Of a stretch of DNA of 64,000 nt, positions 16,801 through 55,072 are shown one piece after another (position 1 is the first letter of the stretch; every line of letters begins with the position of its first letter). The translations under genes were made by a program, and so were the position numbers. This DNA is from Trichosphaerium sp. ATCC 40318 (lineage: Eukaryota > Protista > Tubulinea). The stretch covers positions 1 through 64,000 of the forward strand of contig JALMLS010000548.1 of NCBI GenBank assembly GCA_038496445.1, given 5' to 3'. The notes beneath the pieces are model-generated. The model was not told the DNA's origin and did no database searches. It saw nothing but the letters and a program-made list of their open reading frames with translations.

Positions 16801-17071
16801 TTTAGGTTTGGTTGTCTTTTTAACAATTATTTTGATAGCCAAACTGCTACGCCCAAGTTATTACAGTGAACAATCAACCGAAGATTGTAATATACTCTAT
16901 GCGGCCTATTAGTGCTGGAGAGGAAATAACTTACGACTACAAATTTCCTATCGAGCCCGATGAAGATAAAATACCTTGTCTATGTGGAAGTAAGTTCTAA
17001 TACTTTTTTTATCTTCTAGCGTTATATCTAATTCCGTGCCAGGTGAGAAATGTCGCGTTTACCTAAATTAA
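10826..17071 (+). CDS. SET1: SET1/SETD1-type histone H3K4 methyltransferase (RS-rich N-terminus, RRM, N-SET, SET, post-SET)
   Basis: [80 protein letters not shown]; RRM near 12990-13250. The 5' exons are less certain. Confidence 0.9.
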
Positions 17072-17316: not shown

Positions 17317-18630
17317 TTATTTTTTTGTTGCTTTTTTAGATCCCTTTTTACTCTGTTGAAAAAGTCGCTTTTTGGCTTCAAGAATGTGATCAAGCCATTG
17401 CTAAAGTTATAAGCTTAACTTCTTAAATATGATTACAAATACCTGAGGCGTATACGACACATCGCCACCATAATATTCGTGTAGTTGACTTTTATCAATG
17501 TACTTTAACAAATCTGCTTCAGAACTCAAAATTCGCATCTACACTGTTTGTCAGCAAATGTTTGATAGTATTTTCCTACCCTTGAAAGTATTTTTGATTT
17601 TACAAAGAGGCGTGCTATAGCCATTAGAGCAGTAAGAAACACAGGAGGATTAAGAACCTTGAGTAAGAAAAAAGTAAGAATATGGTACTTTGGCAAACAT
17701 CGTACTAGCAATCTTTTTGTGCGGCAAGGGAATTTGTTTTCAAGTAATTCCATCAATTTCTTACGCATTTCAACATCAAAATGCGCCCATGTCATGCCCT
17801 TCATATCTACTACAACACAAATGCCATTGCGATGATAGTCCATTCTATAAACACATGTTATTACATTCAATGCCCAAACAAAAAGAGTACCCTTCAGAAG
17901 TAAACGAAAGCAAATGAACAGCAGTCTAAACTACTCTTTAGTATTTATGACAACTTAGACTGTTATTACGCACAGCAAAGTCTAGCGCATCTTCTCTGTC
18001 AACAGTAGCAGGGTTGAGAAAAGTTACTCTATTGTACAGAAGTGCATAGCCCTCAATTGTTCGAGCCCCTTACTACAGGTCAACAGCAGCAACAAAACAA
18101 ATAATACTACCTGGAACGCTCAGGAATGCTCCACAAAGCGTCACCTCTTTAGAAATTGTATTGGGTTTATAGGCTCTGCTTACCCTTTCATCGTTTTGTA
18201 CCCACTTGAAGTACATAAGTAAACTCAAAAACAGAAGATTTGAAAAAAGTTCTTACTTCATAAAACCCTTTCGCCATTTTGACTGTCCTTTCCAAGTCGA
18301 ATTTTCTGGCGAATAGCATTCCCATCAATAACCTCGAGCTTCACTGAGCTTATGACTACGCCGAAATAGGCTTACCGATCATGTATTACTGACAATATAC
18401 TATCGGTGAGCAAGTTTTTCACCTCGTTAAGCGCTTTGAGCTCGTGTGGAAAGAGTTCAGTTGAAAGTCCTCCTCGTGGAAATTCCCCAAGCTGTTGTTG
18501 CTATGTACGTGTCAGACAATGCTATTAGGTATGCACCAACCTCATAAGTATCAGGGCTTTTAATTCCAGATGCTTTCTTTTTCTTTTTGCTTTTCGGTGT
18601 TGCAATAGGCGAAACTTCAACTGTTGTCAT
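17317..18630 (-). CDS. CRAL-TRIO/Sec14-like lipid-binding protein
   Basis: MLFARKFDLE, GICVVVDMKGMTW, LENKFPCRTK, VLNPP..MAIARLFVKSKILSR, LHEYYGG. Confidence 0.88.
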
Positions 18631-18999: not shown

Positions 19000-20522
19000 T
19001 TAAGCTTTCCAAACTACAATGGCACCATCTAATCCAGTAGTAGAGAATGAAGAAGCATTGCCAGGTGCTCCAACAAACGCATCTAAGCATCTAGGCAAAA
19101 ATAAATAACATTAAACAAAAAAAGCAAAGTCAACTTACGTTACGCAATTTTGATGAGTTGTTTTGGCAGCTGAACCACCAGACCTGTCGGCACCGCCTCT
19201 AGCGTCCATGTTCCTGAATTTTTGGAAGGCGCTGAATTGTTGTGGTGCTGCGCTAGCTGTTTTTTGGTCCATTTCTTTTACTTTTGTAATTCCACCTTTA
19301 ACGGTAAATCAGATAAGTCAATACAAATTACCACGCACTCTCATTGCCAGAGAATATTACTGGGCGACAGTCATGACCAACACAAACAAAGTTGTCTTCA
19401 GACAACCACATTACATCAAGGAATGGTAAACCACCGTAAGGGAAAGTGAACTCTTGATGTTGATTTGGAGCAGGAGCGTGCAATAAATGCACAGTAGAGT
19501 CGTGGGTTACAAAAGCAATCCTAAAACATACGTAAACAAATAAAAACAACCACCAAATTGTCGAAAACTCGTACTTGTTACCAGATGGAGACCATTTGCA
19601 AGCATGTACCCAACCGTTTGTAGGGATTTCTTTAAGCATATTACCAAATGGCAATCTAGTACCGTAAGGAGTACCAGCCTTTGCGACTTCCCTGCGAAAC
19701 AAAGTGAATAACGTCAACCGAATTTTGTTAAAGTAGAATTAGACCACTTACTTTGAGTCTACGTTTCTAACGAAAGCAGATACTACACGTAAAGTAGAAT
19801 CAGCACAGGCAGTAGCTAACAAAATATTGTTAGGGTGCCATGCGATATCGAGAATGGTTGAAGTGAAAGACTTTTTGATGTGCTTAGACACCCACCAATC
19901 GTTCTCCTAGTTACCGCCGTAAGTATACAAAAATAGTTTTGTAGAGTGGGGTGCGTGACAGGTAATTTTTTTTTTTTCATTTTCTTTTTTTGTAACGTTG
20001 TAGAGTTGGGTGAAAGTAACGCACCTTATCAAAGTGACAAACGGACACTACTTTAGCGCCACTGGCTACAGCGAATTTGTCCTCGTTAGGGCTCCACTTA
20101 CATCTAGTGGCAGCGCGATTGAGCCTCAAAATAACCAATGTTGGTTTCCACTGGTTTTGTTGAAAGCTCCATACATAAGCGTTTCTGTCCTGCGCGCAAG
20201 TAACGATTCTGTTGCTCTTTTCTCCCCAATCTATACCAGTGACAACAGCGTCGTGCTAAGAGCGTCAGAAAGCGCATAAATCACTAAAAACGGCCAAATA
20301 CTAAAATTTGCGGTGATGCCCACCTCCTTCAAAGTGTGCTCGAGTGTGTAGTTTCCAACACCGTTTCTTTTGTAAATGAGCACTTCATTGTTATTTGGGC
20401 ACACAGCAACGCCTGTCAATTGTAAGTTAACGTGATTAGAGCTTCATCTTGTTCGTACGCGTTTTATCCGCGTTCCAAGCGTGGCAAGTGATACTAATAG
20501 CTAAACGAGCTTTATCAGTCAT
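19000..20522 (-). CDS. ARPC1: Arp2/3 complex subunit 1 (ARPC1/p41)
   Basis: [60 protein letters not shown]. Confidence 0.97.
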
Positions 20523-20772
20523 GTTTACAACAATATTTAGCTTCTATACCGGCGTTGACAGCCTGTGCAAGAAAAAAAAAAGTTTATGACTGTTTTTAGT
20601 AAAACGCAAGTTTCCCCACTGTAACTGCTAGACTACGAATGGCATTACGCCACAGTAGTTCGTAGCCTTTTTTTATTATTTTACTAGTTTGGGTATTTTG
20701 AAATTGAACACCCTACCAACGGTTGATGCACCGTGCGCCCAGTAACCGTTATGTTATACAATGACAAGCGCT

Positions 20773-23700
20773 CTAAGAGCTTAGAACAGGAAAGCGCGTT
20801 GTAGTAGAGTTACAAGTAACATCTGGCGTTTGCCATCTCGCACTGCCTTGTAGAATGAGTTCTGCAAAAAACTTGTCTGCAGCCTGTTGTACATTGTCAG
20901 ATAAAAATCGAGATGAATGACTCTACCTCAACGAGTCTAGGTACAAACGCATCTCCTAAGCGCCTAAAACTCCAAGAAAAGCTAGCACTGATTGGTGGTA
21001 CGGTTCCTTTCGGGACAGAGCGTATTAGTTTTTAACAGAACTAAGTGTGCAACACATACCATCATTGAGCTCTTCGATTGTAACGTAACGAATCTCCAAC
21101 GAAGCGAATAACCCATAGCCAGCGATTATAATTGGAATTTTACGTTTTATCCAACTATGGCGAAGGCTGGTGAGCTCCAGTGGTTGTTCGTCAGTTGCAT
21201 TTACTTTATCCAATACAGCTTACGGACGAAATTATAAGCATTAAATATTGAGCCTTGTACTTACATGGAAAGTATGTGCTGACAGTGCCGAGAGTGTCGA
21301 AGGATGAATCTAGTGGAATATTTTCAATCTTTGTCGTTTTCTCAAAATATGGCATGTGGCAATTGCCTGTAATAATAACATGTTAGGAAAAAGCGCTAAA
21401 ACACTTGTCTATAGCGTGTTGAAGTGATTCTCACCTTGATTTAACTCAATTTTTATGGAAACTGCACGTTTTTGTGGTGTGTCAGTGTCAGTATTAAATA
21501 CAGTTGTAAGGTTTTCTCCCAGGGCTCTATACAAGATACGCCCATTTTTGGTTGATGAAAACTCTGTTGATATAAATGTTAGACTTGAAATACAAAGACA
21601 TCTTTTTGACTCTGTGTACCTTTTTGTTGAATTCGAAATCTAAAGTCTTCTTGCAATTGCCTTAAAGTATCATCGTTTGTATCAAATTTTCTGCGCTCTC
21701 TTATAATGGCATCGCCTACTCCAAGATTATTTTAAGAGTATCGAATTAACATACCTTTGTTGGTCGATATAGACCAACCGGTAGGTTTAACAGCAGGATC
21801 ATCCTCCAAAGATGATAAAAACGCTAAAAAAGCTTCTACACCTTGTTCACGTGCTGTGAATTGTGCAGGGTCCAATTCAAAAGAATACTGTCGCTGATAC
21901 TGTAGTCGTGGTCCAATTGGGAAGAAAAGGAAGAATGCAACACCTACCTTTTGTCAATCCAAATTTTTAAGATAACAATCTACTCACCAAACGCAATGAC
22001 AAGCATCATCAAAGGTAGTAATACAAACGGCGTGATTTTGTCATCGTAAGCAACATATGGTAAGCGTCGCTTGATATGACCACGTCTTATGTGAAACAAA
22101 ATGAGTGCGTACACTAAAAGAACAATTAGATAAATAAATTACGTTGAATAAAGTATGTACAGCAAGAAACAGCACACACTGAGAGTAGTGCAACTCCAAA
22201 TATTTTACCAACAACGGTGCCTTGCTGCCATCCAATGTTTATCACTGGTATAGCAATACCAACAACAAATATAAGTGTGTTGAGCCACCAAAGCAATACT
22301 CTTTACAAGAAAATATTGTTACTGCCAATTCACAAGAACTTTATCTTTTCGCGTACCTCTCATTTGCAAAAAAAGTTTTTGGTTCTATTTTTTGCCTGTT
22401 ATCAATCGGAGGAACAATAAATTCGTCAAGCAGCATTTCGTTGGCTTCATGTCCTCCAATACTAGGTACCAATGATTGATTCAAATTATTAACAGTTTTT
22501 AGAGATCTCATTGTTGCTGTAAAACTTGTAAGTGTCAAAGCACGCCATACTCATGTTTATCGTACGTTTGCTTGATATAGATCGTTCCATAGGTTGTTTG
22601 ACATACCAATTAGTACCCTGTGTTGTACTAATATTTACTACTGGATTATCAAACCTGCCTATGATCAGAAAACCACTACAATGTATTTTATACGTACCAA
22701 TGCGGAAGTACTTTACAAGAGTCATACCAGTGAGTGGCTACGCCATGCTGAAACTTGGAAAAGCGTTCAGCTGAGATAAGGTAACCACTCTCTACTAGAT
22801 CAGTTACCTAGATTCAGTTAGATAATTTGGTAATCAAAAGGAAAGCGAGAATGTACCCAATCTGGAGGTATATCATGTAACTTAAGTTCCAGTACGGCCA
22901 TAGGGAATATTAATAAATCTTCTTTGTTTGATATAGGACCTTCTCTAAACCACTTTCCAGGAGCTATGGTTCATGGTAAATATAATGCGAGGTAAATCGT
23001 ATAATACCATGATTTTGTGTCTCCTTTAAGAACTGTAGCTCAGTGTCAATAGACACGCGTACTTGATTGGAGCTAGCAAGTTGGAACGCAGCACGCGTAT
23101 AGGTTGTGCGCAGGCGTGCCCTTAATTTTTTCTTTACAACCCTAAACATCAATCAATATAAAAGAATACCCACGTCTAGACTGGTTGTACGTTTCTTGAA
23201 TTTGGTTTGCTAAATCCCATTGGCGACGAATGGATGCCTTATCCATTCCTAAGTTCTTATTTAACAGGCTTCTCATTGCTGTTTTTAATACCTTCTTTTT
23301 GTAGTCTGCGTACATCGTCTTGATACGACCAATTACCTTCCAGAAAGTCTGCAACTACATTTGATCTTATAGGTACACGTTCTTTTACAGACTCTGCCAA
23401 AACCCAACTCTCATGATGAGTTTTCTGCTCAAGAAAAATCTCATCCCGTAATTTCTTTCCATACCTACAGTAGTAAGGATCTAATCATATTCTGTCGCAA
23501 TTCCATACCATCTAAATCGAATCAATTTAGCCCCTTCTTTTTTAGATAGACGAGCGTGATAACAAGAGCCACGCTTATTATCAAGGTAAACTGATGTAAT
23601 CAATCCAGCATCATTCAAATGTGGATCATCAATTTCCTCTTCCATGTTTGCGTAGTTCTCTGACAAACCTTGGCCACGTCCTAATTACAGTCCCAGTTAA

Positions 23701-24712
23701 TTCTCGTAAAGGATCTAAATATTATGGTACCAAAGATAAGGACTGGTAGGTTCTTTGCAATCTGCATTTTGACACGCATAATATCTGCGTTTTTAACCCA
23801 GAACTTTCGCGTTTGTCTGTCAAAAGACTCTGGAGGATTCCATACACTTTTTACGTTACCATGAAACAGAGTGAAATACGCGTCACTGAGTACAACCTGT
23901 GGAAAAAAGATAAAATTAGCTTTGTTCGAAAAAAATGACTACAAGTTCAATGTAGTTCCAAATATGTCAGACGTACAAGCAAACCTGAGAAATTAATGTT
24001 GGTAAACGACTCACGTGCAAGTCGCTCCACAAAGAATCCTTGGGAGTTCGATTTTTTAACCTAAAGAAGAGATTGAGTAAAATGATCATAAACCAAAAAG
24101 GTGTACCCACCTCATCGTATAAACCCAGTAGATCTACAAACTGTTTGTAAACAAGACCTACAAATTGATCCAACATCACAATTTGTTCTGCCACCTATTT
24201 TATTCCGACGGTTAATACTTGAGCGAGTGAACACAGTTCAGTGCACAGAACAACAATATCAGTACCTTATCTAATTCCTCTTCGTAGACTTGCTTGGCAC
24301 TATCAGTCATGTTCTTAATGGACTATTTCGCTTAGTTACGCGTTGTTATAAGCTGGTTGGTACCTTTCGCATCAATTTGTGTGCAATAAATACAAACGTT
24401 TCTTTTAATTCCTTGTAAAACTTGTGTGTGCATTTATTTATGCGTAGTACTTGCTCCTCAACCACTGAAAAAAACGCATCAGATTTTTTGGAGTGTATCA
24501 GCGCTTTTAGATCTGCTACTTTCAGCAAGTGCGGTGCAAACTTAGGGTCCGTTAGCACTTTTCTGTTCCGCGCTAGATCTGGTTTATTTGCCGTATCAGG
24601 GATAAACCTGTAGGCGCTAACGTTAGTTTTGAAAGGCTAGCGTTTAACAAATGTGTCACACTGACCCTTCTGTGTACCACTTAGGCGCAACTTTTGGCCT
24701 ACTGGTGGACAT
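20773..24712 (-). CDS. VTC4: VTC4-like polyphosphate polymerase: degenerate SPX + VTC catalytic domain + DUF202 3-TM region + extra C-terminal domain
   Basis: FDRQTRKFWV, ITSVYLDN, LIRFRWYG, FLEQKTHHESW, RTTYTRAAFQ, RVSIDT, FPYAVLELKL, FSKFQHG, EPKTFFANER, YDDKITP. Confidence 0.9.
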
Positions 24713-53729: not shown

Positions 53730-54244
53730 ATAAGAACCCAACCAAAAAAAAGCCCAACATACATTATACAATAAGTGACGAACGCCTGTTTTTTTTTACA
53801 AAGAGCCCATGCCTGGCGAACAACCTGAACCAATTCCAATATTTGGTTGATGATTCGATTGCATTTTTTTTCAAACAAATCCCAAAGGGTATTTGGTTAC
53901 CAAAGCAACTTCGATAACCATCAAACCAAACAAAAAAAAAGTAAAAATAAAAGGTCACTTCTCAGTAAACCGTTGCCTTTCACTACACAACTTGCTGGCC
54001 TTAGCACCTATTGTAAGGAATATTTACAACCTCACCTTTCAGGAGTAGTGCAACAATGAAACGGGAAGCTACAATCAATGTCAAGTTTACTTCACTGAAC
54101 ATTATCTGTAATAAGTGATGGCACTCTAACATCAAAGTTATAGCTTACGAATGGAATTACCAATCCCAAAACGCGGAATGTGTCAGAGTATTACAGCACC
54201 GAATTGTATTGACTTTAATTGGGCTGTTTAGACAACGCCAAACA

Positions 54245-55072
54245 ATGAGCTTGCTTACTATTCTACAACTTCCTATAGAAATACAATACCAGATTATACA
54301 TACTGATAACTTTGTGTATATTAAATGGCCACTGCTTTGCTTCCAAACGGCTATAACATCAAGGTTTGATAATAAGTTAAATAAACAAGGAAAAACTGTT
54401 AGACACAACACCATACCGCGTAAATCTATAACAACAGCTTATTTTGTGGATGGTTTACTCCATGGACCATGTACAACCAAATATATAGATGGTAGCGATT
54501 CCTTGAAGTGCGAGCACTATCACAAAGGACTAAAACACGGAAGATGGACTTGGCAGAGCCAAAAGGATAAACTATCTCAAGAATGGATATATGAGCATGG
54601 TGTGGAGGTTAAATTTACAGACTGGTACATCAATGGCCATGTGCGTACAATATCACGTGATGTTGGAGAGAATAAGCACTTTAACAAACATGGTGACCTT
54701 ATTATACACTTTTTTAACGATGAGCAAGGTGAAAGACATGGAGACTACAAGCAATGGCACATCAATAGACAACTAAGATTATGGTACAAGTATAAGAATG
54801 GAAAACGTCATGGCGTACAGAGGGAGTGGCATCCAGAAGGAACAATTAAAGAAATGTATTGTACAAAGGATGGTAGGAGGCATGGATCTTATGAAGCATA
54901 CTTTACAAACGGAACAAACAAAAAAGTATGTACATACAAAGAAGGATTTCTTGATGGTGAGTACAAGAGGTGGACAGACTTTGGTCATCTCGATTATCAC
55001 GAGATGTATTCAATGGGTAAGAAAATACCAATTAGTACGACACAAAATATACCACAGTGCATAACTATGTAA
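54245..55072 (+). CDS. Intronless MORN-variant (YwqK-like) repeat protein with F-box-like N-terminus
   Basis: LLTILQLPIEIQYQII at the N-terminus, then repeats such as YKNGKRHGVQREWHPEG and YKEGFLDGEYKRW. Confidence 0.8.
   Translation: MSLLTILQLPIEIQYQIIHTDNFVYIKWPLLCFQTAITSRFDNKLNKQGKTVRHNTIPRKSITTAYFVDGLLHGPCTTKYIDGSDSLKCEHYHKGLKHGRWTWQSQKDKLSQEWIYEHGVEVKFTDWYINGHVRTISRDVGENKHFNKHGDLIIHFFNDEQGERHGDYKQWHINRQLRLWYKYKNGKRHGVQREWHPEGTIKEMYCTKDGRRHGSYEAYFTNGTNKKVCTYKEGFLDGEYKRWTDFGHLDYHEMYSMGKKIPISTTQNIPQCITM

Follow-up and report, generated by a model that had tools for sequence, protein, structure and literature searches.

Yeast Vtc4 ends shortly after its third transmembrane (TM) helix, TM3, and Vtc2 and Vtc3 are subunits of the VTC complex with inactive triphosphate tunnel metalloenzyme (TTM) domains. 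To our knowledge, the luminal handling, measuring or protection of the emerging polyphosphate chain is an open question. A VTC4-type gene with a long C-terminal extension was analysed here in a window of 64,000 nucleotides (nt) from Trichosphaerium sp. ATCC 40318 (contig JALMLS010000548.1 of GenBank assembly GCA_038496445.1, positions 1 to 64,000 of the forward strand). In the yeast VTC structure, in which the TTM domains of Vtc2 and Vtc3 are described, each subunit has three helices, the extramembrane domains described (SPX and TTM) are all cytosolic, and nothing but lipids is noted at the luminal face of the channel (PMC9911596). The protein predicted from the window resembles Saccharomyces cerevisiae Vtc4 (8i6v_E, 7ytj_D, and 3g3q) in its VTC tunnel polymerase, which keeps the catalytic Lys (K200), in the three membrane helices that come next, and in the EPKTFFANER and YDD turns conserved in the membrane region. 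Unlike yeast Vtc4, whose chain in 8i6v_E has 721 residues, it runs about 277 residues further, and its SPX part was unrecognised by Pfam on the one exon searched. The best explanation, held with reasonable but incomplete confidence, is a single VTC4-type polymerase gene with an intron-split TM3 that would encode a lineage-specific C-terminal luminal domain of about 277 residues, with the function proposed below.

The gene was modelled on the minus strand as 23 exons, from the ATG at 24712 to the TAG at 20773, with 2820 coding bases and 939 codons fully in frame. The product of 939 residues (20773..24712; the coordinates below refer to the minus strand unless stated otherwise) would be composed of a divergent SPX-like N-terminus, a VTC polymerase domain, three TM helices, and the C-terminal extension. 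The surrounding sequence was eukaryotic in character, with very short introns. RNA contigs from a single public run holding part of the stretch covered 22453-22788 and 23304-23568. When boundary ambiguity was allowed for, these contigs skipped 22517-22565, 22653-22695, and 23457-23500 (43–49 nt; CT..AC on the plus strand, equivalent to GT..AG on the minus strand). Since the contigs behaved as spliced RNA, the VTC4 gene is expressed, lies on the minus strand, and has introns of 43–49 nt. Taken as a whole, the gene model is well supported by sequence statistics, not by RNA.

The VTC polymerase domain, a triphosphate tunnel domain, was encoded by exons 6–12 (22700..23896), which followed profile positions 2–233 of the Pfam family VTC (PF09359) in order. 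Six exons matched the profile co-linearly at positions 2–30, 36–70, 72–114, 136–174, 180–208, and 209–233, with E-values from 1.8e-9 to 0.093, the last two matches being weak when taken alone. The best match of exon 6 in the PDB was yeast Vtc4 (8i6v_E, residues 189–224). In this alignment, the Lys of RQTRKFWV was located at K200, so the catalytic Lys was kept; the RKFWV segment with the K200-equivalent Lys lies at 23818-23795. The further segments IRFRWYG and AVLELKL, with catalytic residues, were recognised by eye only. The SPX-like region occupied 24364-24712, where exon 2 (81 residues) showed the pattern FF..L..E...N.FY by eye; this exon, searched alone, gave no Pfam match at E-values up to 0.1. 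Judged by these matches, the upstream part is a VTC4-type polyphosphate polymerase.

In the membrane part, the conserved EPKTFFANER sequence and the YDD turn were both found, with hydrophobic helices after EPKTFFANER and around YDD. Three hydrophobic segments were located by hydropathy at residues 563–586 (TM1, 22299-22228), 591–615 (TM2, 22215-22094, spanning an intron), and 635–661 (TM3, 21912..22036, split by a 44-nt intron). The assignment of TM3 also drew on exon 16, which aligned weakly (E 0.24–0.37) to yeast Vtc1 over the TM2–TM3 loop and the beginning of TM3, and which ended about 15 residues before the end of Vtc1. No Pfam family was matched by three single exons of the membrane part. 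For the intron separating TM2 from the TM3 exon (22113-22161), two in-frame donors were seen, GTACAT (47 nt) and GTAATT (29 nt); the 47-nt form was chosen, as it fits the size range of the other introns of the gene.

The loop between TM2 and TM3 was strongly basic (HIRRGHIKRR), so TM3 should run from the cytosol to the lumen and the extension should be luminal. A cytosolic N-terminus followed by an odd number of helices would likewise place the extension in the lumen. A luminal position of the extension is thus likely if the fusion is real.

The TM3 exon ended at 21988 in phase 1 and was followed by a 44-nt intron and seven exons, A to G, whose phases were all compatible. The critical intron between the TM3 exon and the extension (21944..21987; GTGAGT..GGTAG, phase 1) is of a size within the 43–49 nt confirmed by RNA, and lies outside the RNA coverage. 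The introns between the extension exons were 36, 56, 68, 46, 53, and 43 nt, all of the GT..AG type. The extension contained 289 residues, of which the first 11 or so (VAFFLFFPIG) completed TM3 and about 277 lay past the membrane. Exon A (21755..21943) encoded the last part of TM3 together with the QRQYSFELD segment; an amphipathic helix was predicted in it at 21869-21804. Exon B (21620..21718) contained the CYTH-like motif KFDTNDDTLRQLQEDFRFR (21689-21621), the sole stretch matched by CYTH profiles. A NAGNAG-type tandem acceptor (GGAG|TAG|) was observed before exon B (21719-21721 and 21716-21718), where use of the second site, 3 nt downstream, would drop one residue. Exon C (21435..21563) carried the sequon NLT (21513-21505) as well as AVSIKIELNQ, a segment of amphipathic, strand-like character, and exon D (21265..21366) contained the first in-frame Met of the extension. 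Exon E (21060..21218) carried the sequon NAT and the moderately hydrophobic stretch IPIIIAGYGLFASL (21138-21082). Exon F (20927..21006) had an alternating SASFSWSF stretch, and exon G (20773..20883) an amphipathic helix-like stretch, the sequon NST (20811-20803), and the stop codon TAG (20775-20773). The three sequons, NLT, NAT, and NST, were accompanied by two Cys residues; three sequons are about the chance expectation at such a length.

The initial annotation had described a VTC4 polymerase with further exons spliced in frame after its third TM helix, and this picture was largely borne out. The polymerase identity agreed with the PF09359 match over six exons, yeast Vtc4 as the best match in the PDB, the kept K200, and the three hydrophobic helices that follow. 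The extra exons were present on the minus strand with in-frame splicing, and the extension contained every peptide that had been quoted, together with both Cys residues and the three sequons (NLT, NAT, and NST). The counts had to be revised, as the model has seven exons and 289 residues (about 277 past the membrane) starting at 21943, in place of six exons and about 260 residues starting at 21905.

The coding nature of the extension was evaluated with a codon-usage model trained solely on VTC4 exons 1–16, with a background limited to sense codons for the extension total. The model frame was the best of the three in all seven extension exons; for exon A, the codon log-likelihood ratio was +14.3, the two alternative frames giving −8.4 and −40.5. 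The extension as a whole scored +18.8 bits, compared with −38.5 ± 12.7 bits for stop-free random open reading frames (z = 4.5), and none of 5000 such frames reached the real value. The G+C content of the proposed introns was 0.33 versus 0.41. The introns of the extension, 36–68 nt long with canonical splice sites, resembled the RNA-confirmed introns of the VTC4 gene. Exons A–C, which gave the strongest coding signal of the extension, contained no Met residue, so no separate protein could start there. In addition, a protein ending at the stop within the intron (AFGE*) would have a TM3 with only about 15 apolar residues past the YDD..TP turn, and exon A supplies the remainder. Together, these features indicate that the fusion of the extension to VTC4 is probably real.

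In the proposed arrangement, the SPX-like and polymerase parts would be cytosolic, three helices would cross the membrane, and the added domain would lie in an acidocalcisome-like or vacuolar lumen by the exit of the polyphosphate channel. The luminal domain would be non-catalytic, since, one CYTH-like motif aside, it has none of the acidic residues that tunnel enzymes need. Its most likely role, suggested only weakly, would be to meet the emerging polyphosphate chain, so as to hold, cap or hand it on, or to relay the state of the lumen to the channel. A large luminal domain occurring naturally on VTC4 would offer an experimental handle on luminal polyphosphate handling, including chain length, synthesis rate, and granule formation. 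If the domain is merely a lineage-specific glycosylated stalk or sorting signal, the finding would be a modest annotation point.

Several observations count against the proposal of a VTC4 fused to a luminal, chain-meeting domain. The RNA contigs of the run gave zero coverage in 20600-22450, which includes the predicted 21988/21943 junction. A spliceable open path of equal length occurred in 9 of 300 simulated sequences (p about 0.03 for splicability alone), so such a path is weak evidence when taken alone. Two competing acceptors near the modelled one would both yield short canonical tails. With 33 basic and 36 acidic residues, the luminal part had a net charge of −3, which gives no hint of a domain that simply binds polyanions. 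No homologue with such an architecture was found, so evolutionary support is lacking, and the function assigned to the domain is pure inference.

Relatives of the extension were searched for by several routes. The phmmer search of exon A against 1.84 billion (1.84e9) cluster representatives gave no matches, and the VTC4 gene itself was not among the results. Metagenome contig scans with extension exon E and VTC exon 8 gave no related locus. When the seven extension exons were compared with Pfam one by one, no family (CYTH, VTC, and mRNA-triphosphatase included) was matched at E-values up to 10. PDB searches by phmmer with exons A, B, C, and E returned chance matches only (DNA ligase, protein A, and fibrinogen), and exon E had no usable match in the ESM Atlas. 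In the titles and abstracts listed by full-text literature searches on VTC4, no VTC subunit with a luminal domain was described. The best reading of the luminal part is a lineage-specific domain, one whose sequence has no detectable relatives.

Two other candidates were considered for the extension. An internal duplication of the gene's own VTC tunnel domain was rejected, as comparison with the VTC part by BLASTP and Smith-Waterman was at chance level. An EF-hand-like reading of DTNDDTLRQLQE was dropped by eye, since position 6 was not Gly and position 8 was Arg, and no Pfam EF-hand was matched. Single-sequence folds of exons A and E gave lone helices with a predicted local distance difference test (pLDDT) score of 67–74, the helix of exon A covering exon residues 25–46 and exon E forming one long helix. 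These folds were judged to be a fragment artefact and were not used.

The initial annotation had further proposed that the luminal part is a second, degenerate tunnel domain. According to this proposal, a CYTH/TTM domain with its metal-binding acids replaced would sit at the luminal mouth of the channel and thread or bind polyphosphate. The CYTH profiles used for comparison were built from E. coli ygiF, 12 plasmid-borne homologues (28–50% identity), and 240 database proteins, and cover the YgiF-type CYTH only. The sequence YFDTPD..L..G..LRxR was invariant or near-invariant in the YgiF-type CYTH domains aligned, and the only segment of the extension picked by the profiles was KFDTNDDTLRQLQEDFRFR, at profile positions 41–67. 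The local score of this segment was 1.1 bits with the narrow profile (24 of 2000 shuffles equal to or above the real score), 2.8 bits with a 20-sequence profile (7 of 2000), and 4.2 bits with a 131-sequence profile (45 of 10000; p about 0.005). The proposed FDTxDxxL..RxR hallmark of CYTH therefore held as a motif, being near-invariant in the YgiF type and the one part of the extension that matched the profile.

The match did not extend to the domain as a whole. HHalign of the whole extension against the CYTH profiles gave probabilities of 0.7–1% and P-values of 0.055–0.086 (1% and 0.055 with the 131-sequence profile), which were not significant. In a glocal Viterbi alignment, the whole model scored −36.5 bits; shuffles gave −46.7 ± 6.9 bits, and 60 of 800 scored as high or higher than the real sequence (p = 0.075). 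At low stringency, HHalign produced a co-linear alignment of 180 columns, in which QRQYS was placed on ExExK, R..W on R..W, LNDG on LD.G, and SxSxS..LGD with the following helix on ExExE..G with its helix. Neither ExExK nor ExExE was present in the extension, and QRQYS and SASFSWSF, respectively, stood in their places by this low-confidence alignment. The absence of ExExK that had been proposed was thus confirmed, and its equivalence to QRQYS came from the low-confidence alignment only. The claim of a second tunnel domain was not upheld, as there was no significant whole-domain relation to CYTH/TTM and no meaningful match of single exons in Pfam (seven exons) or the PDB (four exons).

A tunnel fold nevertheless has several points in its favour. 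The segment KFDTNDDTL..FRFR agrees with the near-invariant YFDTPD..L..LRxR of the YgiF-type CYTH at a level equalled by only 45 of 10000 shuffles, the co-linear layout of 180 columns is the picture first proposed, and several segments of the extension are amphipathic and strand-like with polar faces. Inactive TTM domains have a precedent in Vtc2 and Vtc3, and the functional link between TTM domains and polyphosphate is the sole thing that raises the prior. On the other side, besides the non-significant whole-domain statistics, the p-value of about 0.005 is uncorrected and applies to a family picked after the motif had been noticed, and chance matches are expected across tens of thousands of families. 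No exon matched CYTH, VTC or mRNA-triphosphatase in Pfam, the extension showed no similarity to the tunnel domain of the VTC4 gene itself, and the comparison was confined to YgiF-type profiles. The tunnel fold of the extension is thus an attractive, unproven hypothesis, and it was considered improbable, although it is the most probable of the alternatives considered.

The known systems that come closest to such a fold differ from the extension in several respects. Yeast Vtc2 and Vtc3 would be a precedent for a degenerate accessory tunnel domain in a VTC machine only if the TTM assignment is right. Their inactive TTM domains are cytosolic, N-terminal to the membrane helices, and clearly homologous to that of Vtc4, whereas the domain described here is C-terminal, predicted to be luminal, and has no detectable similarity to the VTC domain. 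The bacterial YgiF-type CYTH-CHAD proteins (E. coli ygiF and its relatives) share the short YFDTPD..L..LRxR motif and have a tunnel domain fused to a polyphosphate-related module. However, the protein described here has neither the ExExK/ExExE acids nor a CHAD domain, and its whole-domain match is non-significant; it is also eukaryotic and membrane-anchored, and the domain in question is probably luminal. Since the acidic motifs are all gone, the domain would be non-catalytic if it were a TTM. A catalytically dead luminal tunnel domain on VTC4, by which polymer made in the cytosolic tunnel would pass through the 15-helix channel into a second, non-hydrolysing tunnel or clamp, is a doubtful proposition. 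If true, the clamp would stop back-sliding, determine how long the chain becomes or protect its end against luminal polyphosphatases, and would be a built-in exit module absent from every described VTC complex.

A second alternative to the fused luminal domain concerns the junction at TM3. The main product could be a short canonical VTC4, formed through a 40-nt or 88-nt intron or by intron retention, with the downstream exons being part of a minor isoform or of a second, overlapping transcript. One competing acceptor AG (21949-21948) lies 4 nt upstream of the modelled site and would give a 40-nt intron and a tail of 23 residues. The other (21901-21900) lies 44 nt downstream and would give an 88-nt intron, a tail of 7 residues (VSATVFF*), a TM3 of 21 residues, and a VTC4 of canonical length, 658 residues. 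With intron retention, the protein would end inside the intron at a TAG (21982-21980). The overlapping transcript would start inside the TM3 exon, where two in-frame Met codons stand directly before the hydrophobic stretch, and MMLVIAFGVAFF.. would serve as the signal peptide of a separate secreted or luminal protein. The position of the junction outside the RNA coverage is also compatible with a short product. However, the 88-nt intron would be the longest of the gene, in which the others are 36–80 nt, and the 40-nt form sets an Arg and a Cys-Cys pair in the middle of TM3. A promoter within a coding exon would be unusual, and the downstream exons are coding either way and need the upstream exon for their translation start. 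A predominantly short VTC4 was accordingly regarded as rather unlikely. With one donor and three acceptors (introns of 40, 44, or 88 nt; 21900-21987), alternative splicing at this site might switch the luminal domain of VTC4 on or off.

A third alternative would alter the topology of the extension: IPIIIAGYGLFASL would cross the membrane as a fourth helix, leaving about 190 residues in the lumen and returning the final 70 or so to the cytosol. The mean Kyte-Doolittle hydropathy of the stretch was 1.42–1.46 over 19 residues, below the usual threshold of 1.6, and only 14 uninterrupted apolar residues were present before a Glu and an Arg. The single-sequence fragment fold was helical, with a block-mean pLDDT of 87–88 over residues 21–40, but alignment-free fragment folds tend toward helices. 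The KRK cluster would moreover be luminal in this topology, contrary to the positive-inside rule. A fourth helix is therefore very improbable. Least credible of all is a non-coding extension, in which translation would stop a little past TM3, the seven exons being stretches left open by chance in the 3′ untranslated region: this would agree with the GT..AG path of equal length in 3% of simulated sequences and with the lack of a homologue for the first extension exon, of a related locus for one extension exon, and of RNA coverage, but it is opposed by the codon usage (z = 4.5, with 7 of 7 exons best in the model frame), the poorer G+C content of the proposed introns, the truncated TM3 that would result, and a stop codon only about 250 nt from the start of the next gene.

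The next gene downstream lies on the minus strand at 19300-20522, starting about 250 nt after the VTC4 stop, and had the look of a WD-repeat protein of the Arp2/3 complex subunit 1 type by eye; one large exon of this candidate, compared with Pfam, gave no match. Two unrelated neighbours were found nearby, a CRAL/TRIO (Sec14-like) domain exon at 17529-17870 on the minus strand (PF00650, E 7.8e-11) and, at 16866-16997 on the plus strand, the C-terminal end of a SET domain (PF00856, E 9e-6). An open frame of 287 residues at 54209-55069 on the plus strand had a weak match to the MORN-repeat variant PF07661 (E 0.0045, below the curated cut-off) as its sole match.

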